Assembly (NCBI RefSeq): GCF_006345805.1 | Contig: NC_043001.1 | Span: 18,166,001-18,230,000 of the forward strand | Source: Octopus sinensis | Lineage: Eukaryota | Length of the DNA: 64,000 bases | Reading direction: 5' to 3' | In this document: positions 16,811 through 56,291 of the stretch, piece after piece | How positions within the stretch are numbered: the stretch's first letter is position 1 | Layout: every line of letters begins with the position of its first letter | Program-made: the position numbers and the translations under genes | The notes under the pieces: generated by a model | Database searches by the model: none | What the model saw: only the letters and a program-made list of their open reading frames with translations | Told to the model about the DNA's origin: nothing

Positions 16811-16986
16811 ATTCTCAACAAAGAAAGCCTATCTGGTCACCTGCAAAAACCAAAAGCCATGAAAGCTCTAAGACCAAAGACAACATAAGTGATTCTGACA
16901 CAACAAACAAAGAACAAACCATGCAGACACCAGATTCAGAATCCCACATTGAGCTTCGAAGGGGACGTAGTGCACGATCAGTACAG
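16811..16986 (+). CDS. First recognisable coding exon (A) of the homeodomain/TFII-I/chromodomain gene: (D)SQQRKPIWSPAKTKSHESSKTKDNISDSDTTNKEQTMQTPDSESHIELRRGRSARSVQ, a disordered S/K/T-rich segment
   Basis: Polypyrimidine tract ending TTTTTTACAG at 16810; CAG|GTCAGT donor at 16987; open frame; phase 1 to 0, matching the next exon. Confidence 0.75.
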
Positions 16987-19900
16987 GTCAGTATATAAAT
17001 TTTAGCCTCTTAAATTCTTTATATAGCTCTTTCGCTTGTTTCAATCATTGGACTGCAGCCTTGGGCAAGTTTACTCTTTTACTTGTTTCAGTCATTTGAC
17101 TGTGGCCATGCTGGAGCACCACCTTTAGTCGAGCAAATCGACCCCAGGACTTATTCTTTGTAAGCCTAGTACTTATTCTAGCGGTCTCTTTTGCCGAACC
17201 GCTAGGTTACGGGGATGTAAACACACCAGCATCGGTTGTCAAGCAATGTTGGGGGGGACAAACACAGACACACAAACATATATACACTCACACACAAGAT
17301 GGGCTTCTTTCAGTTTCCGTCTACCAAATCCACTCACAAGGCTTTGGTCGGCTCAAGGCTTTCGTAGAAGACACTTGCCCAAGATGCCACGCAGTGGGAC
17401 TGAACTCGGAACCAAGTGGTTCGTAAGCAAACTGCTTACCACACAGCCATGCATCATTTCAAAAAGTTGAATTGTTCTCAACATTTTAATTCTTCTACCT
17501 GCTCATTCATGGTCCATGTTTTCAAAGTTTGGTGTGCTGCAGGTGTTTGTTTCATTCTCTATGTCATTTTCATTCTTTTTTTTTCTTGTGTGTGTTTGTC
17601 TTACAAATTTCTTGGTGACCTCGCTGGTGCTGGTGCCATGTAAAAAGTATCCACTTCACTCTGTAAAATGGTTAGCATTTGGAAGGGAATTCAGCTGTAA
17701 AAGCCATGCCAAAACAGATCCCACCAATGCTGGTCCCTTGTAAAATGTACCCAGTCTAATCTGTAAATTAGTTGGTATTAGGTGGGGCATCCACCCATAA
17801 AGCCTATGCCAAAACAGTGGAGCTTGGTACAGTTCTCTGGCTTGCCAACTCCTGTCAAACCATCCAAATAAAATAAATAATGTGCCCTTTTAAAGCCTAG
17901 CCAGGCTCATGGGCCCAGTTTCAGTGGTGTATGTGTTCCCCAGCTGGACAGGACGCCAGTCCATCGCAGTGTTACTCATTCTTGCCAGCTGAATGGACTG
18001 GAGCAACGTGAAATGAAGTGTTTTACTCAAGAACACACCACGTTGCCCGGTCCAGGAATCGAAACCACAATCTTACGATCATGATGCTGACACCCTAACC
18101 ACTAAGCCACATGCCTCCACTCAAGCCATCCAAACCATGCCAGTATGGAAGACGGACATTAGATGATGATGTTTATCTCATAGGTTGGGTGGTTTTATTG
18201 TTTATGTAGTTCTTTCTTACAATTGAATGTCTTTCCTACTAGATATGACTCAGCTGGGAATCAATGAGTGGAACTTGGTTTTTATTAGTCTGGCAAAATG
18301 GACAGATTTGGGTCCTTTTCTTCAAGGACTCAACGCAACAACAGTAATTAGATCACAACTTATTAGCTTATTATTCAGCACCTTGACCAAAAATCATTGT
18401 GCTCTTTTGTTTCATCATCGTTTAACGTCTGCTTTCCATGCTGTCATGGGTTGGACAGTTTGAGGATTGGCAAGCCAAGAGACTGCACCAGGCTCCAATC
18501 TAATCTGGCAAGATTTCTACAGCTGGATGTCCTTCCCAACGCCAACCACTCTGAGAGTATAGTGGTGCTTTTTACGTGCCACCAGCACAGGAGCCAGTCA
18601 GGTGGCACTGGCATCAACGACGCTCAAATAGTGCTTTTTACATGCCACTGGTACGAGAGCCAGTCTGGTAGGACTGGTATCAACCATGCTTGAATGGTGC
18701 TTTTTACGTACCACTCAGGCGGTACTGGCATCAGCCACAACAATGATTTCACTTGACTCAACAGGTCTTCTCAAGCCCTGTTTATTGTCCAATGTTTGAA
18801 GATACTCTTAAATGGGCCGGTTATGCAACACTGGCATAGGCCATGGTTACGGTCTCACTTGGCTTGCCAAGTCTTCTCAAGCGCAGCATATCTCCAAAGG
18901 TCTCAGTCACTTGTCATTGTCTCTGTGAGGCCCAACGTTTGTTTCAAATAATAAAAATTCATATTGGAACAAAGAAAATGGGTAATGTTCTAGAGGTCTG
19001 TAAGTGTTTTGAGACTGCAACAAATAGCCAGGTCATAGTGCTAGTCTGCAATAAATGCCAACTGATCCGGACAAGCATGGAAAACTAAACATTAAAACAA
19101 TGATGGGATGTCATTAAGCAAGAGAGGTGTTGATATACCCTCTGGTAGGGAATTAGTTTGTCCCATAAAAACCTTCTCGGGAAATTTTGGTGCCTGCTCT
19201 TCATAGTCAGCAATTTGCAGCATAGTGAATTAATTGTCTGTTCACAGGAAATGCCATGATATATCTGCAGAAGATTATGAACTCAAGAAGTTTGAAGTCA
19301 CAATCAGATAACTTAATAAAACTGCTGAAGTCAAATTCGATGACTGGTATCCATGCTAGTGGAGTGCTAAGAGTACCGTACAAGCGTGATCGTTTCCAGA
19401 ACAACAAGCTAGCATCTGTGCTGGTGGCACGTAAAAAGCACCATTCGAGCGAGGTCATTGCCAGTGCCGCTGGACTGGCTCCTGTGCAGGTGGCACATAA
19501 AAAGGACCTTTTGAGTGTGGCCATTGCTAGTACCGCCTAACTGGCCCTTATGCTGGTGGCACGTAAAAGCACCCACTACACTCTCGGAGTGGTTGGCAGT
19601 AGGAAGGGCATCCAGCTGTAGAAACTCTGCCAGGTCAGATTGGAGTCTGGTGCAGCCATCTGGTTCGCCAGACCTCAGTCAAATCGTCCAACCCATGCTA
19701 GCATGGAGAGCGGATGTCAAACGATGATGATGATGAACATAGCTTTCAGAGTTAACCTCTAATTGAATCAGATGTGCTAACGTTTCTTGGAAGAATTCAG
19801 GAGTTTGTAGCTTTTACTTTAACTCCATGGTTGCTTTGATTATGTGGACCTATGATCAAAAGTATTTTAGCCATCCCCTCCCAGGAATAAGATACTCTAG

Positions 19901-20232
19901 AATGCACTATCCATTATGTCTTTCCAACGTATCCATCTTTTTAAAGACAGTATGGTGTAGTTTAGAGGAAATTTAGCTGTTATTTCTACCAGATCAAGCA
20001 ACTCCCGCATTGGTTTGTGTTTTTCAGTCATTGTAAGTGTTTCCTTGCTGGACCCCACTTTTAAGGGTTGTAATCATTTAGATTTAACTTTACTGCTTAT
20101 GTTATATAATCACCTGGAACATTGTTTATGTAGGAAGAGGGAAAGATTTGAACTCTGAATCTGTAATCTACTGCCATGCTAAATCCTGTAGTTTTGAATC
20201 CTCCTCCATCTCTGTCCGTGTCCTCTTTACAG

Positions 20233-20403
20233 AATAACTCTGTTGATCAAAGGCCTATTCGCAGATGTTCGGAATTCAATGACACACAGCTGGCCTTTCT
20301 AGAGTCACAATGGCAACTAGGAATGGTGTCCGTGTCCCGTGACTGTTGGAAGATGATTGACGATACTGCTGAATGTATTGGAATTTCATCAGCTCGAGTA
20401 AAA
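20233..20403 (+). CDS. Exon B: helices 1-2 and start of helix 3 of an HDX-type divergent homeodomain (NNSVDQRPIRRCSEFNDTQLAFLESQWQLGMVSVSRDCWKMIDDTAECIGISSARVK)
   Basis: TCTTTACAG acceptor and AAA|GTAAGT donor, phase 0 to 0. The F-x-D-x-x-L-A-x-L-x3-W-x2-G-M-x-S-x4-C-x3-I-x3-A pattern matches the HDX homeodomain as I recall it. The intron falls at the common homeobox position just before the helix-3 xW. Confidence 0.85.
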
Positions 20404-21685
20404 GTAAGTTGCATTGCTATTATTATTATTTTTTTTTTTTTTTTTCCTTTCTTCAAATTTTCTTCCGTTTCTTGCCGAGTGTTTTCCGTACACCTAGGGC
20501 AGAGAAGCTCATTGTATGCATTCCCAGATTACACACACAAATTCACCAATAAAATATGTATTTAAAAATAAATAAATAAATAAATTCATGGATGGTTGTT
20601 GTTTTCACAGCAATAATGCCCTTTTCAGTACATGAGCTGTTCCAGTTATTATTATTATTACTACTACTACTACTATTATTATTATTATTATTATTACTAT
20701 TATGTGTCGGTGGCACATAAAAAACACCATCCGAGCGTGGCCATTCGCCAGCCTCGTGTGGCACATAAAAAGCACCCACTACACTCACAGAGTGGTTGGC
20801 GTTAGGAAGAGCATCCAGCTGTAGAAACACTGCCAGATCTGACTTGATTGAGTAATCTGAATGCTAAAGGGTTAAGCCACTAACATTTAAACTGGCCATA
20901 TCCAACCCAAATATTCTACTTGGTTTATGCTCTTACTAGCCACATCTGGCCGCTCACCTACTTTACAATGTCATTCTAAAAATAAGCAATCACGTCATTG
21001 AAATCTCAAAGCAATGAGTTAATGCATGATTGGTGCCATGTAAAAGGTATTTGTGCTGGTGCCACATAGAAGAAAGCACCCAGTACACTCTGTAAAGTGG
21101 TTTGGCATTAAGAAGGGCATCCAGCCATAGGAATCATGCCAAAACAGATAGCTGGTGCCCAGTGCAGCTCCCAGCCATACCAATTCGTCAAACCATCTGG
21201 CCCATACCAACATGGAAAACGGATATTGATGATGGTGATGATGACAACGAATAAATATGCATTACATTTCACAGAGTTATTGTTTAACGTCTGCTTTCCA
21301 TGCTAGCATTGGTTGAACAATTTGACTGAGGTCTGATGAACCAGATGGCTGCACCAGACTCCAATCTGATCTGGCAGAGTTTCTACAGCTGGATGCCCTT
21401 CCTAACGCCTACCACTCCGAGAGTGTAGTGGGTGCTTTTACGTGCCACCGGCACGAGGGCCAGTCCAGCAGTACTGGCAGCGGCCACGCTCAAATAATCT
21501 AAATACTAAAGCATTTAAGATATATTTAAGTTAAAACCTTTTTTTCATAATTTTATGCCAAAAATCTTATTGTGTTCCAGACACTGGCTTTTAACTGAAA
21601 ATTACTTTACTAAATTACGGAGATATACTTGCATAGCAAGTGACCTGATCTGAGACTATGTGCTGAAACAAAAACAGTTGCAGTA

Positions 21686-21945
21686 TGGAAGGTGTTTATA
21701 AGCCATTTAAAAGCACACAAAAACCATTAGATTCACTTCAACATTTAAATTCAATTTGTCAAAATATATTCATCGCTTTGAGACCCTGACTTGTTCACTG
21801 ACAAAATTCTGTGCTGCATGGAATTTTATCAGTGAACAGGTTGTAGTCTCAAAGCAACAAAAATATTTTGAGAAATTAAATTTAAATTTTGAAGTGAATC
21901 TAACGGGTTTTGTGTGTTTTTAAATGGCTTATAAACACCTTCCAC
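21686..21945. repeat. Inverted repeat with arms of about 125 bp; a single-arm relative lies at about 36302-36510
   Basis: TGGAAGGTGTTTATA...AAAATTC and GAATTTT...TATAAACACCTTCCA arms around an 11-nt spacer. Confidence 0.7.
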
Positions 21946-22079
21946 AATGCTATTTGTTTACTTTACTAAAACTTACCAAAATCTTAATTTTACTTCTTTT
22001 TTTTTTTTAAGTACAATGGTAGTTGTTTTTCATTTTAATCACAAATGGTTTAATGTAAAATCTTACTGTCTTCTTTTTA

Positions 22080-22644
22080 TTGGGTTGTCCAGAAAGTTTG
22101 TGCCGATTTATAGCAGCTTACCTTTCGACTTATTTTAGAACATGGTTGAGTCCGTAAAATTGAATTTGACTACACCTCCATTTAGAGCACAGTTTAAGCT
22201 AACTTTTTGTGGAAGAAGGTTTATGTTCCTATAACCTGTCTTAATTCTGTAACCCTTTAAAATGGAAAATAAGAAAGTTCATTTTCGGCACTTGATGCTT
22301 TGGGAACCAGACAAAAATTGCTGCAGCTCAGCTGGGATGTGTTACCTCACCCTCCATATTCACCAGATATGCTCCTTCGGATTTCCACTTATTCAGGTCT
22401 CTGCAGAATAGTCTTTATGGTAAAAATTCCAATTCCTTAGATGACATAAATAGACATCTTCATGAATTCTTTGCCATGAAACCACCTCAATTCTGGGAAG
22501 CGGGTATTTTCAAGTTAAAGGATAGATGGAGACGCATTGTGCAACAAAATGGTTCATATTTGGTTGATTTAAAATGTAATGGCAAGTATTTATTGACCTT
22601 TTTATTTCCTTTAAAAATTGGCACAAACTTTCCGGACAACCCAG
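22080..22644 (+). mobile_element. Internally deleted mariner with both 30-bp TIRs and TA TSD
   Basis: TA|TTGGGTTGTCCAGAAAGTTTGTGCCGATTT ... AAATTGGCACAAACTTTCCGGACAACCCAG|TA. The N-terminal MENKKVHFRHLMLW is joined directly to the C-terminal WDVLPHPPYSPD/APSDFHLF...RWRRIVQQNGSYLVD. Confidence 0.9.
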
Positions 22645-23352
22645 TATTATACTACTAATCCTTCTGCCAGCAAATACTAAGAAAAATGATTAAATAAAAA
22701 GGAAACACTAAAGTTCTATTAATTTCTTCTCTTGTTACTTCTTTACTTTCATCTCTATTTCTTTTCTACCCTTTTCCTTTTTTGCTCTTGTTAGCCCCAT
22801 GTAAGCCCCTTGTAAGAACTGATAGAGCAGAACTATAACCAAATGTATTCTAGTCACTGTTACCTTTTTTATTCCGAAAACAATTAGAACTACATTTCCC
22901 AAGTGTCCTTTTTCTTTTCCTTTCTTCAAAGGGTGTATGATACAAAGCAGATTTGACTGCTATTTCTAACATGTTGAATGACCACATAGAAACAGCTGCA
23001 TTGGATTTACAAAAACTGTTTCTCTCTCTCCCTCTCTCTCTCTCCCTCACCCTCTCTCTCTCTCCCTCACCCTCTCTCTCTCTCCCTCCCCCTCTCTCTC
23101 CTTCTCCCTATCTCTCTCTCCCTCTCTTTTTCTCTCTCTCCCTCTCCTCCAACTCTTTATTCTGTACTATTTAAAATATTCAAATTCTCAAAGCATATTT
23201 CCATAAATATTACTTTCATCTCTCACACACTCTCAGATTTGCAACTTTGGCATACACACACACACATTGTCTAAATGTCCAGCTCTGTTTTAAATCATTT
23301 CTCCACTCTTCCAAGAATAAAACTTATTGTTTTTTTTACCCAATTTTTCTAG

Positions 23353-23446
23353 CGGTGGATCCAAGAATACAGCAAAGCTCATGGTTTAGTCATAGATGAA
23401 CCTGTCACTAGAAAACGTAAATTATCAGAATCCAGAAATACAGATG
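23353..23446 (+). CDS. Exon C: remainder of homeodomain helix 3 plus a basic NLS-like motif (RWIQEYSKAHGLVIDEPVTRKRKLSESRNTD)
   Basis: TTTTTCTAG acceptor and ATG|GTTTGT donor, phase 0 to 1. Supplies the invariant helix-3 Trp in register with exon B (RVK|RW). Not in the ORF track. Confidence 0.8.
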
Positions 23447-25424: not shown

Positions 25425-25609
25425 ATTTTGGTTCCGATACTGGAGGTGAAGAAAATGAAGAACTTGAGAGTGCGGCGAAAAAGAGTAAGAAAAGTCCATC
25501 TAGAAGCAAGACCAAAGAAAACAGAGAGACGACGGACAAAAAAGAGACTAACCGGAACCAGAACAAGCGTGAACAAATTGTGGGGTTACTGGGGAAACTC
25601 AGCCACACT
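25425..25609 (+). CDS. Exon D: acidic/basic linker and start of a TFII-I-type leucine zipper (...NKREQIVGLLGKLSHT)
   Basis: CATTTTATAG acceptor and ACT|GTAAGA donor, phase 1 to 0. The C-terminal EQIVGLLGKLSHT resembles the DEIITSLVSALDSM segment of GTF2IRD1 (recalled). Confidence 0.8.
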
Positions 25610-26693
25610 GTAAGATCCATTTCCATCATCATCATCATCATTATCATCATCAGTTGAAGCATTTGAATATTGCAATGTTTTTAAGAACCCCTTTAGAATT
25701 GTGTGATGAAATAATTGCTTAACCGATTGAGTCCTGTTGTTAATGTTCCTGTTTATGTTTGTTCATTAGCTCCACTCAGTTCTGTTCTGTGATAACAAAT
25801 ATTTTGGATGGGAACACCACTGCATTGACCTGTTGCTATTGTTTTGCATAAATCTTCATGTTGTTGTGGAAGCAAGCTGGTCTCAGATGTTCAAAACATG
25901 ATTTCTTCGGTCTTGGTGTTATGGTGTCATTGAGACCCAAAGGTGCCTTATGACTTAATTCTTCCTTTCACACCGTCTCCGATGAAAGGTCTTGGTGTTA
26001 TGGACATCTTAGACATACTACAGTAGCCGCAGGACAGTGTTGCCCTCTCCAGACCCATCGTAGCAGTTGGTCACAATGTTCATCATCATCGTTTAACGTC
26101 CGCTTTCCATGCTAGCATGGGTTGGACGAATGACTGAGGGCTGGTGAACCAGATGGCTGCACCAGGCTTCAATCTTGATCTTGCAGACTTTCTACAGCTG
26201 GATGCCCTTCCTAATGCCAACCACTCCGAGAGTGTAGTGGGTGCTTTTATGTGCCACCGGCACAGGGCCAGTCAGGCGATGCTGGTAACAATCACACTCG
26301 AATGATGTCTTTTACATGCCACCGGCACGGAGGCCAGATAGCCGCTCTGGCAACGATCACGCTCAGATGGTGCTCTTAATACCCTACTAGCATGGGGCTC
26401 GAGTGCCAGAAAGGTGATGCTGGTAATGATCACGCTCAAACGGTGCCTTTTAAGTGCCACTGGCACGGAAGCCAGTTTGCCAGTCTGTCAATGATCACAC
26501 TCGTAGTGTTGTCAGCTAATAAATCATTTGTCACTTATATTCTACTGTTGATGCTATTTACTGCAGTAATTTATTTTTATCTCATGGTAGCTATTTTCAG
26601 CTAAGGCAACCGATCATTTGCGAATCACACCTATCTTGAACATGAATGCAATGCTCTGCAGGTGGCTGGATATGAACCACCAACCACCCTGCT

Positions 26694-27319: not shown

Positions 27320-27461
27320 TGTTCATCATTGTCATCTCTTGGTGTTGAAACTGCCTGTCTAGCTGTCAACAAACCAGTTGTTTTCACACTAGGTAGTAAA
27401 TATGGTACAAACTTCCTTAAAAAAGAAAAGCAATTACAGAACAAATTTCTTGCCTACTTAG
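27320..27461 (+). CDS. Exon E: TFII-I family N-terminal leucine-zipper/dimerisation region (CSSLSSLGVETACLAVNKPVVFTLGSKYGTNFLKKEKQLQNKFLAYL)
   Basis: TATTTTTAG acceptor and TAG|GTTGGT donor, phase 0 to 1, 142 nt. Aligns without gaps over 47 aa to GTF2IRD1 [47 protein letters not shown] (recalled), with 20 identities by hand. Confidence 0.85.
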
Positions 27462-28357: not shown

Positions 28358-28435
28358 CCAAGGGCAAAGATCAGCCCAAAAACAATCGTAAGAAGCTTGC
28401 AGAAGAAGTGAAGGCCTTATTCAATGAGAAGTTTT
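28358..28435 (+). CDS. Exon F: start of a GTF2I (I-) repeat (AKGKDQPKNNRKKLAEEVKALFNEKF)
   Basis: TTCGTTTCAG acceptor and TTT|GTGAGT donor, phase 1 to 1. LAEEVKALFNEKF matches the I-repeat first helix (LRKQVEELFNEKY). Confidence 0.85.
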
Positions 28436-29978: not shown

Positions 29979-30069
29979 TTAAAACTGTTAATCTTCCACT
30001 TTCACTCTTCTCTTTATCTATATATCTATCTATTCTGCTCACTTATTTTCTTCTCCTTTTTGCTACCAG

Positions 30070-30247
30070 CTTTATGTTGCGGCAGTACTCGGACCATGCC
30101 ATATGTTAAACTGGAAAAAGATCCTATGTTTATCGACATTGAAGGCTTCCCGGATGGCATTATCCTAAAAAGACCACAGTCCTATGGAATATCGGATCTT
30201 CGGAAAATTTTAAATGCTTCTGAAAAAATCCAGTTTCACCTAAAGAA
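30070..30247 (+). CDS. Exon G: body of the GTF2I (I-) repeat (SLCCGSTRTMPYVKLEKDPMFIDIEGFPDGIILKRPQSYGISDLRKILNASEKIQFHLK)
   Basis: Long pyrimidine tract then CTACCAG acceptor; GAA|GTAAGT donor; phase 1 to 2. PY-x8-I-EG-x-P-x-GI-x3-RP-x2-YGI-x2-L-x2-IL-x5-I-x-F matches the I-repeat signature (VPY...[26 protein letters not shown]...IRFVIK). Confidence 0.9.
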
Positions 30248-32532: not shown

Positions 32533-32666
32533 TCCACAGCCAAACAAAAAGAAAGTCACTTCTAACCCGACGCCAAAGAAAGAAAATACGAGTACAGAAT
32601 CCACAGAGAACAATTTACCGCCTCCTACTTTACCTGCTCAGTCCAATGACACACAACCTAATAAAG
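32533..32666 (+). CDS. Exon H: P/T/S/K-rich disordered linker (NPQPNKKKVTSNPTPKKENTSTESTENNLPPPTLPAQSNDTQPNK)
   Basis: TTTGTTTGTTCAG acceptor and AAG|GTGAGA donor; phase 2 to 1, which bridges exons G and I exactly. Confidence 0.75.
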
Positions 32667-35279: not shown

Positions 35280-36116
35280 ACCTCCGAACAAAATCAGACA
35301 GTTTTGGTAATAGTGGCAACAAAAGGAATAATTCCACTCCTCCTCCACCTCAGCTTGAACCTGAACGTCCACAACTTGAGTTGAACATGGATTCAAAGAC
35401 TAAACCAGATCAAGTTCCAAAATTTGGTACAGTTGAGCCTCAGTTCTCAACGTTACCAAAAGCCTTTCAGACTTCAGGGAACACTCCAGGAAGTGAGTCT
35501 TTCTTACACAGTTCGTATATGACTACAAATTCAAACACGGGTTCCCAGGCACAAAACCCCAATAAATCCTTACAAATGAGACAAAGTGCTGCGTTTGGCA
35601 GCAAGCCCATTGTCACAAGCCCTGCATTCTTGCAGCACAGAACTACTTTCGGTTCTGGGAGCAGTCGCCGAAAAGCTCTAGAATTAGCACGCTCAGAGCA
35701 GAAAGCTCTGGAAGAGAAATCTAAAAAGGCTGTTGAGACACTGAAACCTGTTGAGCAGCCCAAGACTGATTTTCAGCAGAATTCGGACAGCAAGTCTGTG
35801 GCCAAATTTGACATCAGTTCAAGATCTGTTGAAGCTTCCAAATTTAAACCAATTGATTCAATGCAATTCAAACCTATGGAGAGCCCTAAGTTTAAGGGCA
35901 TAGAAATTGCTAAATTCAAACCTATAGAGAGTGCTAAATTCAAACCAATGGACAGTAAGTTTAAACCTGTAGAAACGACCAAATCTGACAAAAAATCTTC
36001 TGACAGTGTTCTTGTTGAAAAGAAAAAACCTGAAACACCAAAATCTCAAAAGAAAGAATCAGAAAACACAAAATCACAGAAGTCTAAAGATTCTGATGGC
36101 AAATCAGGAACTGAAA
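35280..36116 (+). CDS. Exon I: 837-nt disordered S/K/P-rich exon containing a short coiled-coil-like stretch (RRKALELARSEQKALEEK) and six KFKP-type repeats
   Basis: Longest non-repeat ORF in the window (35264-36130). TTTTTATTTCAG acceptor and AAA|GTAAGT donor, phase 1 to 1. Confidence 0.85.
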
Positions 36117-39520: not shown

Positions 39521-40477
39521 TATATTTATATATGTTTATGTCTAGTTTCACTATTCAATGTATATCCGTGTTTAGCTCTTTGCTTTCCTATAGCTACACA
39601 TGTTGATGTATATCGTGTTCATTGTTCACACCTCCTGTCACCTTTAGATACACACCTGCCTGTTAATTTAGTTTAATGCCAAGAGATGATACATGCAGCT
39701 ACAAAATATAAATAAGAAAATAATTCATTAACAATTTAGTTTATGTTGTTTCTCCCCCTTTTCTGTTTTTAACTGTGAAATGTTAAAATGATAAGAAAAC
39801 TGCTGGTAGTCTGTGTATTGATAGGAGACAGTTCAAAGTGTGTGTTTCTTGGTGTATAAAGAAGAGAAAATATATTCATTGCTATCACATTCATTGAGAC
39901 AAATGAATATTTATGTATATACACACACACATACATCATCATTGTTTAACATCCGCTTTCCATGCTGGCATGGGTTGGATGGTTTGACTGAGGACTGGCA
40001 AACCAGAAGGCTGTACCAGGCTCCAATCTGAGCTGGCAGAGTTTCTACAGCTGGATGCCCTTCCTAATGCCAACCACTCTGAGAGTGTAGTGGGTGCTTT
40101 TACATCCCACCAGCATGGTGGGGAGGGCAGTCAGGCAGCACTGACATCGACCACACTCGAATGGTGGTTTTTACCTGCCACCGGCACTGGCATCAGCCAC
40201 GTTCAAATGGTGCTTTTTACATGCCAGCAGTACTGGCATCGTCCATGCTTGAATGGTGATTTTTACCTACCCCCCGACACGTGTGTTATGTATGATCGTG
40301 TTGATGTAAAATGAGGATTTAATTTAACATTTCATACAGAGGTATAAAAAAAGAAATTTATTTGAATGAATCTTTACACAGACAGTATTAAGTAGAAAGG
40401 CAAAGCACAGCTGAGTGGGGGATGTTACAGATGTAGTTTGAGGAAAGTTAAAAAAAGATGCTGAAAAATTTGTTAAA

Positions 40478-40866
40478 GCCGGCAGTTTGTTCCATACTTC
40501 AGCAACTCTTAGCGTGAAAAAATGTTTCCGAAAGTCATGGGGGCTGTGCTGTTTTCTGACTTTGTAACCATGCCCATGGGTGTTAGATAGGTGGAGTTTG
40601 AAAAGGTGCTCAGAGTTATTATTTGTAAGATGGTTAATAATTTTATGGGTGTCTACCAAGTCAGCTGCCAGATGTTAGAGTTTCAATGTATCTATGCCCA
40701 GGGAAGTAAGGCATTCAGAATATGCCTGATGGAGGGTATTCTCTTGGTTGCACGTTGCTGAACAGTTTCCAGATGATTAATATCCTGGGCAAGATAGGGG
40801 TTCCAGACCGGTGATGCAAATTCCAGGTGAGGCCACACCATAGCTATATAAAGCCTCAGATAGATA
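40478..40866 (-). mobile_element. CR1/L2-type LINE reverse transcriptase C-terminal remnant (frameshifted)
   Basis: LYIAMVWPHLEFASPVWNPYLAQDINHLETVQQRATKRIP...THGHGYKV...RKHFFTLRVAEVWNKLP. Confidence 0.85.
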
Positions 40867-41167
40867 GCCGGAGAGCAGCTCACAAAGGACTTGGTAATAA
40901 GTACTTCTGTAATAAGTACAGTCTGTGAAAATGTGATTAAGAACTCAATCGGGGCTAATGAATGTGTGGTAGACCTTATATTAATATATGTTTGAAGATG
41001 TTGACATTGTTGTTCTAAAAACTTATGAACGCTCTTGTTAGATTGCAGATAAACCATGGTGAGTATCACAAAACTTGCTACCCTCCTGCCTACTTTTCAT
41101 GCAACCACTTTGCTCTTTTAATTATTCAGGTTTCATAGAACTAAATTTGCTCACTTGTTCACACATA

Positions 41168-41200
<33 letters not shown>

Positions 41201-42933: not shown

Positions 42934-44728
42934 TGTTAGATTAAACGAATAGCCGATTGTCATCATCATCATCATCATTTAGCGTCCGTTTTCCATGCTA
43001 GCATGGGTTGGACGGTTCAACTGGGGTCTGTGAAGCCAGAAGGCTGCGCCAGGCCCAGTCTGATCTGGCAGTGTTTCTACGGCTGGATGCCCTTCCTAAC
43101 GCCAACCTCTCTGCGAGTGTAGTGGGTGCTTTTTACGTGCCACCTGCACAGGTGCCAGACGGAGCTGGCAAACGGCCACGAACAGATCGTGCTTTTACCT
43201 GCCACTGGCACGGGGTCCAGGCAGGGCTGGCAACGGACACGAACGGATGGTGCTTTTACGTGCCACCGGCACGAAGGCCAGTCGGGGCAGCGCTGGCAAC
43301 GGCCACAATCGGATGGTTTGCTTAAACCACAGCTGCAATTTCCATTGATGTTGATCGACTTCGATTTTGGTTCTGCTCTCTGATATCTGATTTGATTTGG
43401 TTTGATTGTGTATGTGTATTTCAAACCTGGGTTGGATGGTTCTACAAATTTTGATTTTTGCATAACCATTTAGATTATACAGGACAAATGGCTGGATCTG
43501 TAGAATTTCAGACAGAATAACTTGTGGTATTTCTCAGTTCAAATCCCATCATCCAGGTTCAGTTTCCTTTTAATCCTTTTAGTCAATAAAATAAGTACTG
43601 AAGGTCAATGAACTCAACTACAAGTTAGAAGCTGGTGCTCCTGTGTGGCCACAGTCCAGAGACTGGAAATGATTTTTTAAAAATACTGTTCATAGCACTA
43701 TCATAGGTGGATTATCCATATTTTCAGTGGGAATAGGCTACCTTGGATAGTCCAATCTACAGTACAATAAGGACAGATGTGCTAAACACAGACAATTATG
43801 GTTGAGCCTGTAGAGATGTTTGAAATCATAGAGTTCCAAAGGAAGGATTAAGAGCCAGGAGACAAGAAAAGCCCTTTGTAATATTTGTTGAATGTCAACA
43901 TCATCAGGAGTTAGATAATTCATACATTGTTGCAAGAATTGTTTAATATACCAAAAAAATCTTAACTTTTCCTCCTATCATTGTTTTTTAAATGAGAACC
44001 ACTTGTAATTTCAGAATTGTGTTCTCACAACCAAATTGGAGCGGCTGTGGCTTGGATGCCAATCGAACCCTCTAGAATTTTCCATTAGCTTCTTTCGTGT
44101 CTTGAGTCTGCTTCGTTAAAGCTAATCATCATCATCATCGTTTAACGTCCGCTTTCCATGCTAGCATGAGTTGGACGATTTGACTGAGGGCTGGCGAACC
44201 AGATGGCTGCACCAAGCTCCAGTTTTGATCTGGCAGAGTTTCTACAGCTGGATGCCCTTCCTAATGCCAACCACTCCGAGAGTGTAGTGGGTGCTTTTAC
44301 GTGCCACCGGCATGGGAACCAGTCGGGCGGTACTGGCAATGACCTCGGTCGAATCTTTTTACACATGCCACCAGCACAGGTGCCAGTAAGGTGATGCTGG
44401 TAACAATCACGCTCGAATGGTGCCCTTTTACATTCCACCGGCACGGAAGCCAAAAGCTATTTAACAACAACAATAGCAACAGAAATGATATCCTTATCAT
44501 TTTTATATTTAATGTCTGTATAATGGAATCCAAGATTCATGATATCTGCAGCGTGTCTCCTTCTCCCATTACAATTATTTTCTGTAGTCTTAGGATCTGG
44601 AACTCAAAGAAGAAGCTTACAAGCAGATGCAATTCAATGGTTGTTTATTTTAGTTCTCATTTGTGTGGCTCGTTCCCGGTGACAGCTCATGGTTCATTGT
44701 TCTGTTTTTGATTTGACGGTCATTCAGA

Positions 44729-44943
44729 ATGCTCACAGCAGCCATATTCCTACCGCTCTATGTCACGCTGGTGAGACCCATATTGGAGTACGGGATTCAA
44801 GCCTCTTCTCCTTATCTCCTTAAAGACATACATCATCTCGAAAGAGTCCAGAAGCTGGCAACCCGCATGGTTCTTGGTCTCAAGCATTTGTCTTATGAAG
44901 AAAGGCTGAAGACGCTCGACCTTTATTCTCTCGAAAAACGACA
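44729..44943 (+). mobile_element. CR1/L2-type LINE reverse transcriptase C-terminal fragment
   Basis: LYVTLVRPILEYGIQASSPYLLKDIHHLERVQKLATRMVLGLKHLSYEERLKTLDLYSLEKR. Confidence 0.85.
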
Positions 44944-47072
44944 ACCGGTGAAGTTAGAGCAGGATAAGAATCTGCTGTGAGATGCCAGCTGGCAGTGTTT
45001 CTCAGCGCAAGTGAGAAAGAGAAGAGAGACTGAATGCCTTAATACGCCTGCTTAAATAGTCATTGGCGACGAGATCTTGCTCTTATCTCAGACATGGCTA
45101 TGGCTGCCAGCGAGATCTTGTACAAAATGGTACTGGCTTCTTGTGTCACGCTACACCTGTTTTGTACACCTATATGAATTATGTCGGTGTATTTCTGTTA
45201 CGGCTATCAACGTATGAATTCCATATAAATGGGTTAGAATTGAAGATGAACAGAGCAATATTCAACCGAAAGAATCAATAGGCGTAGGAGTGGCTGTGTG
45301 GTAAGTAGCTTGCTTGCAAACTACATGGTTCCGGGTTCAGTCCCACTGCGTGGCACCTTGGGCAAGTGTCTTCTACTATAGCCTCGGGCCGACCAAAGCC
45401 TTGTGAGTGAATTTGGTAGACGAAAACTGAAAGAAGCCCATCATATATGTGTGTGTGTGTGTGTGTGTGTTTGTCCCCCCAACATTGCTTGACAACCGGT
45501 GCTGGTGTGTTTACGTCCCCGTAATTTAGCAGTTCAGCAAAAGAGACCGATAGAATAAGTACTAGGCTTACAAAGAATAAGTCCTGGGGTCGATGTGTTC
45601 AACTAAAGGCAGTGCTCCAGCATGGCCACAGTCAAATGACTGAAACAAATAAAAGAGAAAGAGAGAGAGTAAAGCTGTGTGGTAAGAGGTTTGCTTCCGA
45701 ACCACATGGTTCCAGGTTCAGTCCCACTGCATTGCATCTTACCAAAGTGTTGTGAGTGGATTTGGTAAGCAGAAACTGAAAGAGGCCCACCGGGCAAGCG
45801 CACGTGTGTGTGTGTTATGATTTTGCTTAGACATGGTGATACTAATAACCAGTTGTTAGTACTCTATATACATGTGCTTTAGAATAAAGCATTAAGTACA
45901 ATTCATGACGGCACATGGCTCAGTGGTTAGAACATCAGGCTCGCAATCATGAGGTAGTGAGTTTGATTCCCAGACCAGGCTGTGTATTGTGTTCTTGAGC
46001 AAGACGCTTTATTTCACGTTGCTCCAGTTTACTCAGCCGTAGAAATGAGTTGCATACACACACACTTCCAGAGTTTGGACAAAATAATGGAAACACCTTA
46101 AAATTTCAAACAAATTTATTTTAATATTGGGTAGGACCGCCTTGAATTCTATGAGGTGTTGGCCTTTGCCTTTCCCTGGGATAATATTTGTGTCATGGAT
46201 AGGAGAGGCTGGTATGCATGGGCACCTGCCAGTCTTCCATAAACAATCTTGCCCAGACTTGTGCCTCAGAGGGTAACTTTGTAAGTGCAATCCCATGGTC
46301 ATTCATGACCGATGCAGGTCTTTACTCCTTACAGATCATAATATTGATTATTGAGTGACAAGGAACCGGAATTAGGGAGGGAGAGAGAGAGATATAGTCT
46401 TATTTTGTAAGAGTCTTTTAATGCTTATAAATACTCACACTGATTGCTGTTTTTGTTGTTACTTAGAGTTCCAAAAATTTTCAGTACAAAGATGGACATA
46501 GCTGTGTAGTTAAGAAGTTTGTTTCATGATCAGACTGTTCTAGGTTCAATCCCTCAACATAGCACCTTGAGGAAGTGTCTTCCACTGTCGCCTGAGCCAA
46601 CCGAAGGCTTGTCGAGTGGGTTCAGAAGACAGAAACTGAAAGAAGCCTGTTTTTTGTGTGTGTTTGTGTCTCTTTATCTTGGCATTTTACTCTAAGTATA
46701 AATGAATGATGTACTTGCTAATATGCAATCTGCTGTAAAAACATGTCCGGCCATCATACTGTTATTGTTTGAAAGTGTATATAGAAAATACTACCTTGCT
46801 TGAAGATAGGTGAATGTTGGTGACAGGGAAAGCATCAGGTCAGAGAAAATTTACTTCAGTGAATTTCACCCAATACATGCAAGCATAGAAAAGCCGATGT
46901 TATGATATTGTCACCATGGATACCAATTTTTCTGGTGACCTTCATGAACTGTTTAAATTTTGGGGATTATGGCTAAAACCAAAGTGACCATGTTGTAGGG
47001 TTTGATACAACAATATTAGTTTCTTCTCATGGTTTCGGATTGAAATTCTTACTAAACGTGTGTGTGTGTGTC

Positions 47073-47296: not shown

Positions 47297-47343
<47 letters not shown>

Positions 47344-47856: not shown

Positions 47857-47925
<69 letters not shown>

Positions 47926-50138: not shown

Positions 50139-50169
<31 letters not shown>

Positions 50170-51152
50170 TATACGACTTAGGGAAGCTCATCATATATTT
50201 TCGTTATAACATTTTGGAACTTTGAAAAGCTGGTCACATCTTTGTTATTAAATTTGTGGCTTTAAAAAGACAGCAAGCTGGCAGAAACGTTAGCATGCTG
50301 GGCAAAATGCTCAGTGGTATTTCGTTTGCCTTTCATCCTTTCGGGATCAATAAATTAAGGACCAGTTATGCACTTGGGTCGATATAATCGACTTAATCCA
50401 TTTGTCTGTCCTTGTTTGACCTCTCTGTGTTTAGCCCCTTGTGGGTAGTAAATGAAAGTACTAGTGCAATCAGAATGGACATTTAATATTCTATCATTTC
50501 ATTCATCATCATCATCATCGTTTAACGTCTGCTTTCCATGCTAGCATGGCTTTGGACGATTTGACTGAGGACTGTCGAACCAGATGGCTGCACCAGGCTC
50601 CAATTTTGATTTAGCAGAGTTTCTACAGTTTGATGCCCTTCCTAATGCCAACCACTCCAAGAGTGTAGTGGGTGCTTTTAAAGTGCCACCGGCACGAGGG
50701 CCAGTCAGGCGGTACTAGCAACGGTCACGGAAAATCGTGTTTTCTCTTTTTACGTGTCACCTGCACACCGGCACAAGTGCCAGTAAGGTGACGCTGGTAA
50801 CAATCACATTTGAATGGTGCTTTTTACATGCCACCGGCACAGACGCTAGTTAGCTGCTCTGGCAACGATCACGCTCGGATGATGCTCTTAGTGCTCATAA
50901 GATTGTAAATAAAACGTGGAAATCATACAAAGTTGGAATTTCTTTGAGTAATATATATGTGTGCATGTTATTATTATTATTATTATTATTTTAGAAATAC
51001 AGATATGTCATAAACAATTAATTCCCCGGCAAAAATGCACCCAAATAATCCAAACAGCAGCAGATTCTAAACAAATTTTAATGCTCAAGTTTTTTTTAAC
51101 TTCCTGGCATTTTTTTTTATTCACCCTCAAAACACAGAGGAAGCATATATGG

Positions 51153-51605
51153 TCATCATCATCATTGTTCGACCGTGGTCGAGACAATGGAATTTACCAT
51201 GCTACGCCAGACTTCACGGTCCATCATGGCATTACGGAGGTCCTGTTGCTGGATGCCTGTATCCCTGGAGATTACATCAGGGTAGGATAGTGTGCGCCCT
51301 CTGGTATCGCGAGCAGATGGCTTCCAGAGGAGAAGAGTAGAAGTTACCTGTTTTTCAGCTCTACAACAATGTCCAGCAAACTGGACTCTCCTACCTTTCA
51401 CAAGAGATGACACAGGTGGTAGTTTCCCATATATTTGCATTTTGGTTGGATGGTGCTTCCACGAGAGATTTTGAGCTCTCATAAGGAGGCGAGTGTAGGT
51501 TCCATCCAACCGCCTCTCAAGCTTCTTTGATAACGTCCAGGTTTCTGAGCCATATAGTAGAATTGGTTCGACTGTGGCTTTGAAGATACATGGTACAATG
51601 GCCTG
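51153..51605 (-). mobile_element. RTE-clade LINE 3' end (intact reading frame to the stop) with a (GAT)n tail
   Basis: FKATVEPILLYGSETWTL...RRVQFAGHCCR...LLWKP...RGR...AMMDREVWRSMV, followed by ATGATGATGA. Confidence 0.9.
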
Positions 51606-52841
51606 TAGCATGAGCTTGTTTGGAAATTACAGCTATATGGGGAATGTGTTAAGCCTAGCCATTTGTTAGAGAATACATCATTTGATTTATCTCAGTTGTG
51701 TATTGTTTATAAGGAGTAATAGTGTTGTGTTGTAGGTTTGTTTCTTTGAGATGTAAGTCTCTGTTTTTTAGTGCAATTTGTGTGTCTGTCTGTGTGTCTA
51801 TCTATAGTTGTGAGAATTGTTACCATCTCCTCTTCTAACGTTACACATTCTATTGTTAGTCTAACTCCAGATCAGCCCTGATAAACAGGCTTGTTGATCA
51901 GAGGCATTCCAGCCTTGGCCATCCCTTTTATTCATTTAGTTTTGATTATTATTATTTTTTTTTTCTCATTCAGATAGAGTGTAACTAGGACTTCATTATC
52001 CAATATGTCAGTATGTTGTTCCTTTTATTTTATGGTTCTAGGGAGTGGTTTGAGAGAGATTTAGTTTCTATTTCATGCAGGTCGGTCAGAGTGCCATGTT
52101 GAGAAACCCTCATTGGTAGGTAGTACATTGTTGTGTGTCAGAGGGTCAAACAAAAAGTTAGTAACATAAGTAACAGTCATGATTGGAGGTTGATCTCACT
52201 CTCTCTCTCTCTTGCACAAACAGAACAGCAAATATTTCCATCAAAGTCAGCTCACCAAAGACTTAAATTCTGGTTCCTCTGATGAGTGTGAGCGATCTCA
52301 TCCTGACTCTTGTCTTCTTTCGTGATAATCTATCATAGCTTCAGTTTCCCTATCAATATATATTTGTATATATAGGCGCAGGAGTGGCTGTGTGGTAAGT
52401 AGCTTGCTAACCAACCACATGGTTCCGGGTTCAGTCCCACTGCGTGGCATCTTGGGCAAGTGTCTTCTGCTATGGCCCCGGGCCGACCAATGCCTTGTGA
52501 GTGGATTTGGTAGACGGAAACTGAAAGAAGCCTGTCGTATATATATATATATATTTGTGTGTTTGTGTTTGTCCCCCTAGCATTGCTTGACAACCGATGC
52601 TGGTGTGTTTACGTCCCCGTCACTTAGCGACTCGGCAAAAGAGACCGATAGAATAAGTACTGGGCTTACAAAAAGAATAAGTCCCGGGGTCGATTTGCTC
52701 GACTAAAGGCGGTGCTCCAGCATGGCCACAGTCAAATGACTGAAAAGAGTAAAAGAGTATGTCATGGTCTTGATAAATACACATCACATAATCAGGGAGA
52801 ATACATTTTGCCTCTCTGCATTCATCAGTATCTTCATTTAA

Positions 52842-53522
52842 CCCTTTAACATTTAAACCATCCATATCAAGCCAAAATATTCTCCCTTTGTCTTTGTTGT
52901 ATTAAACTGGTCAGATCTGGCCTCTCACACCTATCCTACAATGCCATTCTAACAATATACAACCACATCATCGAAACCTCAAAGCTACAAGATAACGCAT
53001 GTGTAATTCAAAACAACGAATAAATAAGCATTACATTTGACAAAGTAATCTGAATGTTAAGAAGGCGCAATGGCCCAGTGTTTAGGGCAGCGGACTCGCG
53101 GTCGGAGGATCGCGGTTTCAATTCCCAGACCGGGCGTTGTGAGTGTTTATTGAGTGAAAACACCTAAAAGCTCCATGAGGCTCCGGCAGGGGGTGGTGGC
53201 GACCCCTGTTGTACTCTTTCGCCCCAACTTTCTCTCACTCTCTCTTCCTGTTTCTTGAGTAACGCTGTGAAAGACTGGCATCCCATCCAGCTGGTTTGAG
53301 AGAGATTTAGCTTCTATTTCATGCAGGTCGGTCAGAGTGCCATATAGAGAAACCCTTATTGGTAGGTAGTACTTTGTTGTGTGTCAGAGGGTCAAAGAAA
53401 GAATTAGTAAAATAAGTAACAGTCATGATTGGAGGGAACACATATATCACAGAGACCTGGCCCATGAGCCTGGCTAGACTTGAAAAGTGTGCATAAATAA
53501 ATAAAATCTGAATGCTAAAGGG
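52842..53522. mobile_element. piggyBac-type MITE (TTAA TSD, CCCTTTAACATT TIR) with an inserted tRNA-SINE; relatives at about 20850-21030, 24600-25075, 63500-63612
   Basis: TTAA|CCCTTTAACATTT ... GAATGCTAAAGGG|TTAA, with the SINE at about 53063-53295. Confidence 0.6.
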
Positions 53523-55896
53523 TTAATGTCCACTTTTTCATGCTTGCATGGGTCACAACCCTCACCTGTTTCCAAACAAGGTAATATTTTTCTCGTGGCC
53601 TGACATGATTTTTTTTTTCACGGAACACTGGAAAACAAACCACTTTGCTCTGTATGACAGCAATGCTCTTTTACAAATCTCACGTAGCATCAAAACAAGG
53701 GTACACACACACACACACACACACACAACAGGCTCCTTTCAGTTTCCATCGAACAAATCCACTCACTTTTTGCCTTTTCATCTTTTCGGTGATCAATAAA
53801 ATAAGTTCCAGGCACTTGCTCGAATCACATCAGTTGATTGTTTCATCCATCACACTCCTTTTCCAAGCACATAGTCTAGATTCAATGTGAGAACTCCTCA
53901 TCATCATCATCATCATCATCGCCATCATCATCATCATTACCATCATCATCCTTATTTCTTTTCTTTAAATATAACTCTATTTTTGAAAGGTTCCTTGATA
54001 TAATGCACCAATGTTCTCTAAATCCTGAATTTGAGATGACACCAAGTGCTAGTGCAGTGAGTAATGTTTAACTGATACTCACATTAACACCACCCCCCAA
54101 CCTCTTTTATTCGTGTGTCAATCCCTTAATACTTGTGTCCCTTATTTTCCGTTTGCCACCAGCTAATTACTTCCCTTGTTCTTTACCCCTTACTTATCAC
54201 TATTTCCATCCTTTCACACTCAGAGATATTATTCTGCATTTGCTCATATATTTCTTCTTTTGTTTTCTGAAAACTCAGCTTCGTACAAAAAAGGAACCCC
54301 TGTGCGGCCATCCAAACTGCTAGAAATAGCAGCCAAATCTCTTTCGTTTCACAGCTTCCGGTCTTCGAAAAGAAAGACTCACTGGATTTTGTAGTACTGG
54401 GGGTTGCACTATGCCAGAGAAAAGATGAGCTGAAAGCAAAGTCAACTTCGGCTGCATTTAAGCTCTGAATATGTAAAGCTGGCGAAAATGCTACAAAACT
54501 ACAAAATACTTTGTAGCATTTTGCCCTCCATGTTAACAATTCTGCTAGCTCGTTGCCTTTGGATTTTGGCACAAGGCCAGCAGTTTTCAAGGGAAGAAGT
54601 TAGTTCATACCATCAACCTCCAACTGGTATTTTATTCTATTGAACCTGAAAAGATGAAAGGCAAAATTGACCTCTCTGGGATTTGAACTCACTGCATAAA
54701 TAGATTTAACTATACTTGACTACATTTTGTCATCACTCATGTAAATTGTGCAAGGACCCAATCCTATTAATCATCATCATCATCATCATCGTTTAACGTT
54801 CGCTTTCCATGCTAGCATGGGTTGGACGATTTGACTGAAGTCTGGCGAACCAGATGGCTGCACCAGGCACCAATCTTGATCTGGCAGAGTTTCTACAGCT
54901 GGATGCCCTTCCTAACGCCAACCACTCCAAGAGTGTAGTGGGTGCTTTTATGTGCCACCGGCACGAGGGCCAGTCTGGTGGTACTGGCAACGGCCACGCT
55001 CAAAAATGGTGTTTTTTTTACGTTCCACCTGCACAGGAGTCAGGCCAGCAGCACTGGCAACGACCTCGCTCGAATGTTTTGTTCACGTGCCAGTAAGGTG
55101 ACGCTGGTAACGATCATGCTCAAATGGTGCTTTTTACGTGCCCACTGGCACGGAAGCCAGACAGCTGCTCTGGCAACGATTACGCTCAGATGGTGCTCTC
55201 AGTGCTCCATTGGCACGGGTGCCAGTCATCGAATAATGATTCTAATTTCTCCAGAAGGGCACATTATATTGATCTCTTTGTTTGACTAGTACCTATATTC
55301 TATTGATCCAGAACTCATAAAAGGCAAGTTTGACTTTCACAGGATTTGAAACCAATACAGAAAGATAGAAAACTAGACGCTAACTCAAAGGCATTTTATC
55401 AATTCTCCCAGCTGCAGGCCTACATAACAATCCTTTTATTTGCCACAAGGGTTTGGGGGTAGAGTATAGTTGGTTAGATCAAAGCCAAAAACTACAAAGG
55501 GTTTTTTTTTTAATGCATTTCACAGCATAGCAGCCTGGGTGGGACAGGCTTTGCTGGAGTAATTGTCTTCAACAGTTGCTTGTCCGGCCTTCTTATTGCT
55601 AACTACTCAACCATAAGACATGGGTGAGACCTGACTGTGACCATAACTTATGTGTCCGCTCCCACTCCTGATGAGCAGGAGGTCTCTCCTCCAGTCATCT
55701 ATAACACCTTGTGTTGTCCAGTTCACTTAAACCAATTAAAATGATGTTATACTTGGGACAGCTTAGCATCAATCAATTAAACTGCTTCAGTCTCTTTCTG
55801 TCTGACATCATTGGAACCACTCATCAATTTATTATACCTTATTGTAGACATTCCTGTCTCTTCTTTCCCCCACAACTACTCCCATCCTACAGCTAC

Positions 55897-55900
<4 letters not shown>

Positions 55901-55986
<86 letters not shown>

Positions 55987-55995
55987 CTCTCTCTT
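55901..55995. repeat. (CT)n/(CTAT)n microsatellite upstream of the terminal exon acceptor
   Basis: Directly visible. Confidence 0.95.
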
Positions 55996-56157
55996 ATACT
56001 CCCCCTCTTTACTCCAACTAGTTCGTTTCTCTGTTTAACCATTTTCTCTCTACCAATCCTCTGCTATTCTAACCACAGCTACCGTGACACTGCTGTGAGT
56101 AACCTGTTAATTAATTAATAACACCTGTGTTCTTTTCTGTGTTTCATCTCTTTCCAG

Positions 56158-56291
56158 GTGAGGTTTTTATTGTAGAGAAAGTCTTAAAGAAACGTGTGCA
56201 GAAAGGTCATCAAGAGGTTTTGGTCAAATGGAAAGGTTACAGCAATCGTTACAACTCATGGGAACCAGTGGACAACATTTTCACCATGTAA
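56158..56291 (+). CDS. Terminal exon J: Polycomb/CBX-like chromodomain (EVFIVEKVLKKRVQKGHQEVLVKWKGYSNRYNSWEPVDNIFTM*)
   Basis: Strong pyrimidine tract then TTTCCAG acceptor, phase 1; TAA stop at 56289-56291. Has the classic xF/YxVExI...LVKWKGY...NxWEP chromodomain motif. Too short for the ORF track. Confidence 0.85.

Follow-up and report, generated by a model that had tools for sequence, protein, structure and literature searches.

TFII-I and GTF2IRD1 have been studied intensively because of Williams-Beuren syndrome; the 'leucine zipper' of TFII-I mediates dimerisation, and I-repeats bind DNA and partner proteins. HDX is a vertebrate gene placed near the POU class and carrying two homeodomains, for which we know of no described function, while the chromodomains of CBX and HP1 proteins bind H3K27me3 or H3K9me3 through an aromatic cage. 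To our knowledge neither TFII-I nor GTF2IRD1 has a homeodomain, HMG box or chromodomain, and HDX has no annotated I-repeat, HMG box or chromodomain. TFII-I has been described as vertebrate-specific (PMC10721858) and HDX as 'multi-homeobox' (PMC6118893), and Hdx was listed without an invertebrate ortholog (Holland et al., 2007; PMC2211742); later literature treats Hdx by its homeodomain only. Here we analysed a 64,000-nucleotide stretch of Octopus sinensis DNA (contig NC_043001.1, forward strand, positions 18,166,001 to 18,230,000; hereafter the window, with positions counted from its first base), which holds the 3' part of a gene encoding an HDX-type homeodomain, a TFII-I-like region, a single GTF2I-like repeat (I-repeat) and a C-terminal chromodomain. 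Judged by profile searches and intron positions, this gene is orthologous to an old metazoan gene, as yet unnamed, that occurs from hydrozoans to amphioxus, and it represents that gene in cephalopods.

Compared with TFII-I and GTF2IRD1, the octopus protein shows the same colinear arrangement of an N-terminal 'leucine zipper' region followed directly by an I-repeat, but it has one I-repeat instead of five or six, a homeodomain in front (ancestrally together with an HMG box) and a chromodomain at the end, and its family occurs in cnidarians, molluscs, echinoderms and amphioxus. With HDX it shares an atypical long homeodomain bearing the signature W..GM..(x)..WIGN, whereas it combines one such domain with an I-repeat and a chromodomain in place of the two homeodomains of HDX. 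Its chromodomain is 52-58% identical to those of CBX proteins over 38-45 aligned residues, with the cage kept, but is C-terminal rather than N-terminal and, in the cephalopod copy, ends without the C-terminal helix. Teleost proteins of the zgc:113176 type and a set of invertebrate predictions are true relatives, having a common module order and introns shared in Pecten, Branchiostoma belcheri and Clytia. Full-text literature searches returned no paper describing this architecture, which we regard as an ancient, undescribed combination of known modules whose protein models are public but unnamed or misnamed.

We rebuilt the exons independently from stop-free stretches of the + strand, scored AG/GT sites and required entry and exit phases. 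Ten + strand exons between 16811 and 56291, with phases that chain as 1-0, 0-0, 0-1, 1-0, 0-1, 1-1, 1-2, 2-1, 1-1 and 1-stop, joined to 2129 nt, that is, 708 codons and a TAA, with zero internal stops. They are listed here with two further features of the same gene (a slash marks a splice junction):

16811-16986, + strand: coding exon, phase 1 to 0, the gene's first inside the window; Ser/Thr/Lys-rich (SQQRKPIWSPAKTK...), 53% identical to cuttlefish.
20233-20403, + strand: coding exon, phase 0 to 0; arm, helices 1-2 and start of helix 3 of the HDX-type homeodomain, ending ...ARVK/.
23353-23446, + strand: coding exon, phase 0 to 1; remainder of homeodomain helix 3 (RWIQEYSKAHG), then the RKRK cluster.
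25425-25609, + strand: coding exon, phase 1 to 0; acidic/basic low-complexity stretch with KKSKK, at the place of the second half of the relatives' HMG box; its final 23 codons begin the TFII-I-like N-terminal helix (KREQIVGLLGKLSHT).
27320-27461, + strand: coding exon, phase 0 to 1; core of the homology to the TFII-I/GTF2IRD1 N-terminal 'leucine zipper'.
28358-28435, + strand: coding exon, phase 1 to 1; first helix of the sole GTF2I-like repeat (KKLAEEVKALFNEKF).
30070-30247, + strand: coding exon, phase 1 to 2; rest of the GTF2I-like repeat (Pfam E 5.2e-15 for this exon alone).
32533-32666, + strand: coding exon, phase 2 to 1; linker with PNKKK, predicted disordered, 51% identical to cuttlefish.
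35280-36116, + strand: coding exon, phase 1 to 1; 279-residue Lys/Ser/Pro-rich linker, mostly disordered, with donor AAA/GTAAGT at 36116.
35837-35974, + strand: KFKP/KFKG repeats inside the long linker exon, about seven tandem units of 7-9 residues each.
41042-41052 (start and coding part), + strand: alternative terminal exon within intron 36117-56157, following an AG and reading AT TGC AGA TAA, which gives ..E-NCR and a stop.
56158-56291, + strand: last coding exon, phase 1 to stop; CBX/HP1-class chromodomain, ending NIFTM and a stop.

The 708 residues encoded in the window match without a difference the C-terminal part of the O. vulgaris protein CAI9722904.1 (1265 aa; residues 558-1265) and of the O. 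sinensis proteins XP_029636503.1 (1264 aa) and XP_036359081.1 (711 aa); the gene is annotated in O. sinensis as LOC115211899. All ten octopus exons also matched, by tblastn, the cuttlefish homologs that we recovered by protein search, and a 3624-nt Logan contig (SRR21372860) holds an uninterrupted cuttlefish open reading frame (ORF) of 953 codons that ends ...SEVFIVEK...NIFTM and a stop, followed by 154 further non-coding bases. This contig is a spliced transcript and confirms, in a relative of octopus, the junction from 36116 to 56158. The agreement is far beyond chance: positions 16811-56291 are the last ten coding exons of one octopus gene. The ten-exon chain given by the initial annotation, with its canonical sites, phases and lack of stops, was thus reproduced, its basic clusters (RKRK, KKSKK and PNKKK) are all present in the spliced product, and its reading of the exons as a single polypeptide is borne out by the public octopus proteins and the cuttlefish ORF. 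A possible further exon past NIFTM, using the 'GT' in ATGTAA as a donor, was rejected, as the cuttlefish transcript and all octopus models stop there. The N-terminal residues of the public protein (about 557; N/S/Q/H-rich and low in complexity) found no tblastn match within the window when a 560-residue O. vulgaris query was used, indicating that the window holds an incomplete gene, with the 5' half encoded upstream of its first base. Its RefSeq names ('probable serine/threonine-protein kinase ifkA', 'myb-like protein V' and 'MAL13P1.304') are misleading, presumably because of this low-complexity N-terminus; an amphioxus ortholog carries the database name 'La ribonucleoprotein'.

Identity between octopus and cuttlefish, taken exon by exon, was highest in the TFII-I-like core (94%), followed by the chromodomain (89%), the homeodomain and I-repeat (72-77%) and the linkers (44-58%), a pattern that shows constraint on all folded modules. 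Within the long linker, two islands are conserved, PPPPQLEPERP and FGSGSSRRKALE.ARSEQK, the latter predicted to be helical (helix 448-466 of the cuttlefish model, with a predicted local distance difference test score, pLDDT, of about 74). The KFKP/KFKG repeats are kept between octopus and cuttlefish and are absent from non-cephalopod relatives; they could be a cephalopod-specific array of short linear motifs.

Residues 270-340 of the spliced model matched Pfam GTF2I (PF02946) at E 1.6e-15 (57.6 bits against a cutoff of 27), which upholds the GTF2I repeat first named from the bare sequence; searches against PDB gave GTF2IRD1 and TFII-I repeats at E values down to 5e-12, and Foldseek matched it to the GTF2I domain structures 2dzq (6e-7), 2eje and 2dn5. 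There is one such repeat in octopus, in cuttlefish and in most relatives, as opposed to the five or six in tandem in TFII-I. For the segment between homeodomain and I-repeat, hhalign of the family alignment with residues 26-89 of elephant-shark GTF2IRD1 gave a probability of 94.9% (E 4.8e-8), and BLASTP of the octopus segment plus I-repeat with a caecilian TFII-I gave one colinear alignment over residues 22-186 (4e-16). A local profile built from invertebrate sequences only found many vertebrate N-termini of the TFII-I family, always just upstream of the first repeat (GTF2IRD1 at 4e-11, TFII-I at 3e-8). In the AlphaFold2 model of the cuttlefish protein, which was built on an alignment of 21 sequences and is disordered outside the folded modules, a long helix, a hairpin and two helices precede the I-repeat (pLDDT 81-94); no solved homolog of this region is in PDB. 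These alignments establish, as had been proposed, that the segment shares ancestry with the 'leucine zipper' region at the N-terminus of TFII-I and GTF2IRD1, and dimerisation is predicted.

An exhaustive HMMER search of 1.84 billion representative sequences brought out colinear relatives, 21-31% identical to the octopus protein and almost all named 'uncharacterized protein', in a bivalve (Pecten maximus, XP_033744347.1), sea cucumbers (Holothuria, Apostichopus), crinoids (Anneissia, Antedon), a sea urchin (Lytechinus), a starfish (Acanthaster), amphioxus (Branchiostoma lanceolatum and B. belcheri; Branchiostoma XP_019643776.1), tunicates (Ciona, Phallusia), a hydrozoan (Clytia, XP_066914415.1), octocorals (Dendronephthya, Xenia) and teleosts (carp 'Zgc:113176', Poecilia, Cottoperca). 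A word-indexed protein search was uninformative rather than negative: residues 59-345 returned none and missed even the cuttlefish homologs that it had found before, and a 13-sequence family profile returned 4 proteins. Local profiles for each module, together with Pfam, gave a common form consisting of homeodomain, HMG-like box, TFII-I-like region, I-repeat and C-terminal chromodomain in scallop, Holothuria, Anneissia, both amphioxus species and Clytia. The profile of the HMG-like box matched the HMG boxes of TFAM and HMGB1 in PDB (2e-6) and found relatives, not cephalopods. Octocoral and teleost members are without a chromodomain, and among the echinoderm members there are some with two or four I-repeats or with extra zinc fingers. 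These comparisons point to the five-module order as the ancestral form and to the octopus gene as its cephalopod descendant. The combination is therefore no cephalopod novelty, since the same architecture, with shared introns, is found in scallop, sea cucumber, crinoid, sea urchin, amphioxus and Clytia; the statement of the initial annotation that it knew of no protein joining these modules holds for the papers that we searched, but RefSeq and UniProt already contain such entries, called 'uncharacterized' or misnamed.

In some lineages the family is multi-copy or fused to other sequences. Copies more than 90% identical occupy at least 11 loci in Dendronephthya and several contigs in Apostichopus, and in fish and crinoids the members are joined to parts that are jerky-like, contain DUF3504 or consist of C2H2 zinc fingers, which suggests repeated amplification of the gene, or its capture, by mobile elements in those lineages. 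Vertebrate GTF2IRD2, too, carries a transposase-derived C-terminus. If the octopus gene itself were carried by a mobile element or recently domesticated from one, however, neither its single gene identifier in each of O. sinensis and O. bimaculoides (NCBI) nor its many introns, at positions conserved with scallop, amphioxus and Clytia, would be expected, and Pfam reported no transposase or integrase domain in the octopus protein. We consider such an origin very improbable.

The introns bear on the unity of the gene. Amphioxus (B. belcheri) and scallop exons were resolved so as to reproduce their proteins exactly, and the Clytia locus was read from its ORFs, giving the following comparison:

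Within homeodomain helix 3, phase 0: octopus ..VK/RWI.., scallop ..VV/NWI.., amphioxus ..VK/RWI.., Clytia ..VK/EWI..
Within the former HMG box, phase 1 in all three: octopus 23446/25425 (not alignable), scallop ..KR/(G), amphioxus ..MK/(G).
Before the TFII-I-like core, phase 0: octopus ..HT/CSS, scallop ..EN/CTM, amphioxus ..GV/VSK, Clytia ..DL/CKE.
At the boundary of TFII-I-like region and I-repeat, phase 1: octopus ..AYL/(A)KGK, scallop ..HVI/(G)VEK (one codon off), amphioxus with the same phase in a variable-length loop.
Inside the I-repeat, phase 1: octopus ..NEKF/(S), scallop ..ASCW/(Y), amphioxus ..NAIS/(S).
At the end of the I-repeat: octopus ..FHLK/(N) and scallop ..RFVV/(C), one codon off, both phase 2; amphioxus phase 1, one codon off.
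Just before the chromodomain, phase 1: octopus ..GTE/(S)EVF, scallop ..KTS/(D)DVY; none in amphioxus or Clytia.

Thus all seven introns (six from the homeodomain to the end of the I-repeat, and the one before the chromodomain) agree in phase between scallop and octopus, five of them at exactly the same position and two one codon off; four octopus positions are also matched in amphioxus, and two can be read directly in Clytia. The pattern establishes a single ancient gene. It also bears on the possibility that the octopus prediction is chimeric, with homeodomain, TFII-I-like and chromodomain exons taken from two or more neighbouring genes, a concern raised by the last intron, which is 20 kb long and filled with repeats, and by the 41042 exon, which ends some transcripts ahead of the chromodomain. 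Against it, the cuttlefish transcript contig joins all modules in one ORF, three public protein models carry exactly the predicted sequence, and scallop has the intron before the chromodomain at the same position and in the same phase. Moreover, linker and chromodomain share one exon in amphioxus and Clytia, where the architecture is consequently independent of any splice. A chimera, already refuted for the relatives, is barely credible for the octopus.

Taken alone, the octopus homeodomain matched PDB 2da4, which we take to be a homeodomain of human HDX, at E 0.0012 without a gap over 58 residues. A profile of this segment from 12 family members matched 2da4 at 4.5e-16, and the next best homeodomains (ZFHX3, LHX4, Exd/PBX and DUX4) trailed it by nine orders of magnitude, at 7e-7 or worse (about 1e-6). 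The call of an HDX-type homeodomain therefore stands, on our reading of 2da4, with which the NCBI name of one octocoral family fragment, 'highly divergent homeobox-like', agrees. The Pfam Homeodomain model gave no match in octopus and only sub-threshold matches in relatives, as expected because the domain is 'highly divergent', and AlphaFold2 predicted a three-helix homeodomain in the cuttlefish protein (pLDDT about 90). Helix 3 reads RWIQEYSK in octopus and RWIKDYGK in cuttlefish, as compared with WIGN.RKK (W-I-G/D-N-x-R/K-K) in relatives, so that Asn51 is replaced by Glu/Asp and Arg53 by Ser/Gly in cephalopods, where arm residue 5 is Cys; the contact set of Trp48, Phe/Ile49, Asn51 and Arg53 is thus incomplete in both species. 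Canonical DNA contact by the cephalopod homeodomain is unlikely in view of these replacements, and DNA binding by it is less certain than was at first assumed.

One could still take the protein for an ordinary sequence-specific homeodomain factor, an 'octopus Hdx' in which the other modules are accessory. The type of the homeodomain and the name of the octocoral fragment are in keeping with this, and a survey of homeobox genes in cnidarians records a single Hdx gene for Clytia (PMC7642931), the only cnidarian in its table that gave a member with all five modules, which may be the same gene. Every family member, however, has one homeodomain match per protein rather than the two of HDX, the cephalopod residues at positions 5, 51 and 53 speak against sequence-specific binding, and conservation is highest in the TFII-I-like region and the chromodomain rather than in the homeodomain. 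We judge this explanation improbable.

The chromodomain was recovered by Pfam Chromo (PF00385) at residues 668-705 of the model (E 4.7e-12; profile positions 1-39 of 53), in accord with its first identification. Its best PDB matches were the chromodomains of CBX8, CBX2 and CBX4 (3e-13 to 2e-12; 52-50 bits) and the HP1-class CBX5 (5e-12; 48 bits), and alignment to CBX8 showed the aromatic cage positions kept as Phe, Trp and Tyr. AlphaFold2 predicted, for cuttlefish, a three-stranded chromodomain (pLDDT 93) with no C-terminal helix, which Foldseek superposed on CBX, HP1 and LHP1 with root-mean-square deviations of 0.5-1.3 A. On the full model Pfam reported only GTF2I, Chromo and a weak HTH_23, with neither a Pc-box nor a chromoshadow family; the AlphaFold2 model has no second chromo-like fold, and the protein ends within the chromodomain, leaving no RING1-binding Pc box behind it. 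Of the label 'Polycomb-type', then, the CBX/HP1-class match holds but not the Polycomb subtype, as CBX5 scores nearly as well and no Pc-box was reported; the Polycomb and HP1 subclasses cannot be told apart from these scores. The octopus exon stops at NIFTM, ten residues before the scallop end (NILDEGLLKAFYGI and a stop).

The same gene appears to make proteins with and without this domain. RefSeq isoform X2 of both O. sinensis and O. bimaculoides has the C-terminus ...SGTENCR, and the exon at 41042 is the only site in the window able to encode NCR and a stop after the 36116 donor.

The cephalopod copies are derived in several respects. The HMG box is lost and an acidic/basic low-complexity stretch stands in its place (exon 25425-25609), Asn51 has become acidic and the chromodomain is without its C-terminal helix; an N-terminus of about 560 low-complexity residues and a linker of about 320 residues with its seven or so KFKP/KFKG repeats have been added. 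Non-cephalopod relatives retain both the HMG box and Asn51, and those with a chromodomain also retain its full C-terminal helix; they have neither the long low-complexity N-terminus nor the KFKP-repeat linker.

Taking these modules by analogy with their described counterparts, we think it reasonably probable that the protein acts as a dimeric, chromatin-tethered transcription regulator. Its several basic clusters suggest a nuclear protein that would pair through the zipper-like TFII-I helix and contact DNA or partner proteins through its I-repeat, to which the homeodomain and HMG box would add further contacts in non-cephalopod relatives; with Asn51 and Arg53 replaced, the cephalopod homeodomain is probably now a protein-contact module. 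The chromodomain may dock the protein on H3 tails methylated at K9 or K27 by way of its aromatic cage, which would couple sequence-directed regulation to marked, probably repressive, chromatin, and use of the 41042 terminal exon would remove the chromodomain and release the protein from this tether.

Several points weigh against this proposal. The sequence fixes neither which methyl mark is read nor a repressive outcome. The cephalopod chromodomain ends four residues past '..NI', without the C-terminal helix that in CBX and HP1 proteins is packed against the sheet, which makes its stand-alone folding and peptide binding uncertain, though AlphaFold2 keeps the three strands. Finally, with Asn51 and Arg53 lost and the HMG box gone, one I-repeat is the only candidate DNA-binding module left. 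The initial annotation was accordingly too confident in assuming methyl-lysine reading by a chromodomain that lacks this helix, and the targeting to repressive chromatin that it proposed was overstated as well.

Some of the same evidence would fit a TFII-I-like scaffold whose chromodomain no longer reads histones, being a contact sheet or a degenerating remnant, so that the protein would serve as a signal-responsive or structural transcription cofactor like TFII-I and GTF2IRD1, without methyl-lysine targeting. The missing helix (the Pfam match stops at position 39 of 53, and AlphaFold2 places no helix there), the annotated chromodomain-less isoform and the octocoral and teleost relatives that have no chromodomain at all are in line with such a loss. 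On the other hand, the chromodomain exon is second only to the TFII-I-like exon in its identity to cuttlefish, all three cage aromatics are kept, and the segment through '..WEPxxNI', which we take to line the peptide groove in CBX/HP1 structures, is retained. We regard a non-reading scaffold as unlikely, though it deserves serious weight beside the chromatin-tethered regulator that we favour.

The window also contains, on both strands and at 25 sites or more, an interspersed repeat some 215 bp long that fills the introns and flanks of the gene. Its copies are 79-91% identical to one of them, and no tRNA-like part was detected; examples are:

2305-2508, 19510-19725 and 21279-21495: copies of the repeat of about 215 bp.
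26088-26306 and 44137-44354: further copies.
54788-55004 and 60636-60837: further copies.

Long AT-rich simple-sequence tracts at about 11070-12440, 56770-57390, 57960-58140 and 58350-58760 translate as YIYIYI... in several frames, and immediately 3' of the gene's stop codon, at 56-60 kb, GC content is as low as 0.28-0.31. Within introns, ORFs at 22296-22655 (+), 44717-44977 (+), 51165-51626 (-) and 40327-40674 (-), 87-154 aa in length, resemble transposase or reverse-transcriptase tails by eye only, and a 134-aa minus-strand ORF at 40695-41096, which overlaps the 41042 exon, gave the impression of a retroelement remnant; Pfam returned no match for the ORFs at 22296-22655, 40327-41096, 44717-44977 and 51165-51626. 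Searches of the window for tRNA genes and Rfam families were negative.

The interest of this gene is evolutionary and hypothesis-generating, every one of its modules being of a known kind. The N-terminal region of TFII-I and the I-repeat, rather than being confined to vertebrates, predate them by hundreds of millions of years on these comparisons, and these modules were joined ancestrally, in one gene, with an HDX-type homeodomain, an HMG box and a chromodomain. This offers a concrete origin hypothesis for two vertebrate families, HDX and TFII-I: we tentatively suggest, as a possibility rather than an expectation, that the family is the survivor of a single pre-bilaterian gene ancestral to both vertebrate HDX and TFII-I/GTF2IRD1, and that alternative last exons switch the cephalopod protein between a tethered and a free form. 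If so, TFII-I would have begun as a homeodomain/HMG DNA binder with a built-in reader of methylated histones. Clytia, amphioxus and sea urchin are tractable non-vertebrate systems, and the family offers them for asking what an I-repeat does. For cephalopods, the gene provides a candidate chromatin-linked regulator that has undergone lineage-specific remodelling, with loss of the HMG box, a degenerate homeodomain, a truncated chromodomain and added low-complexity regions.

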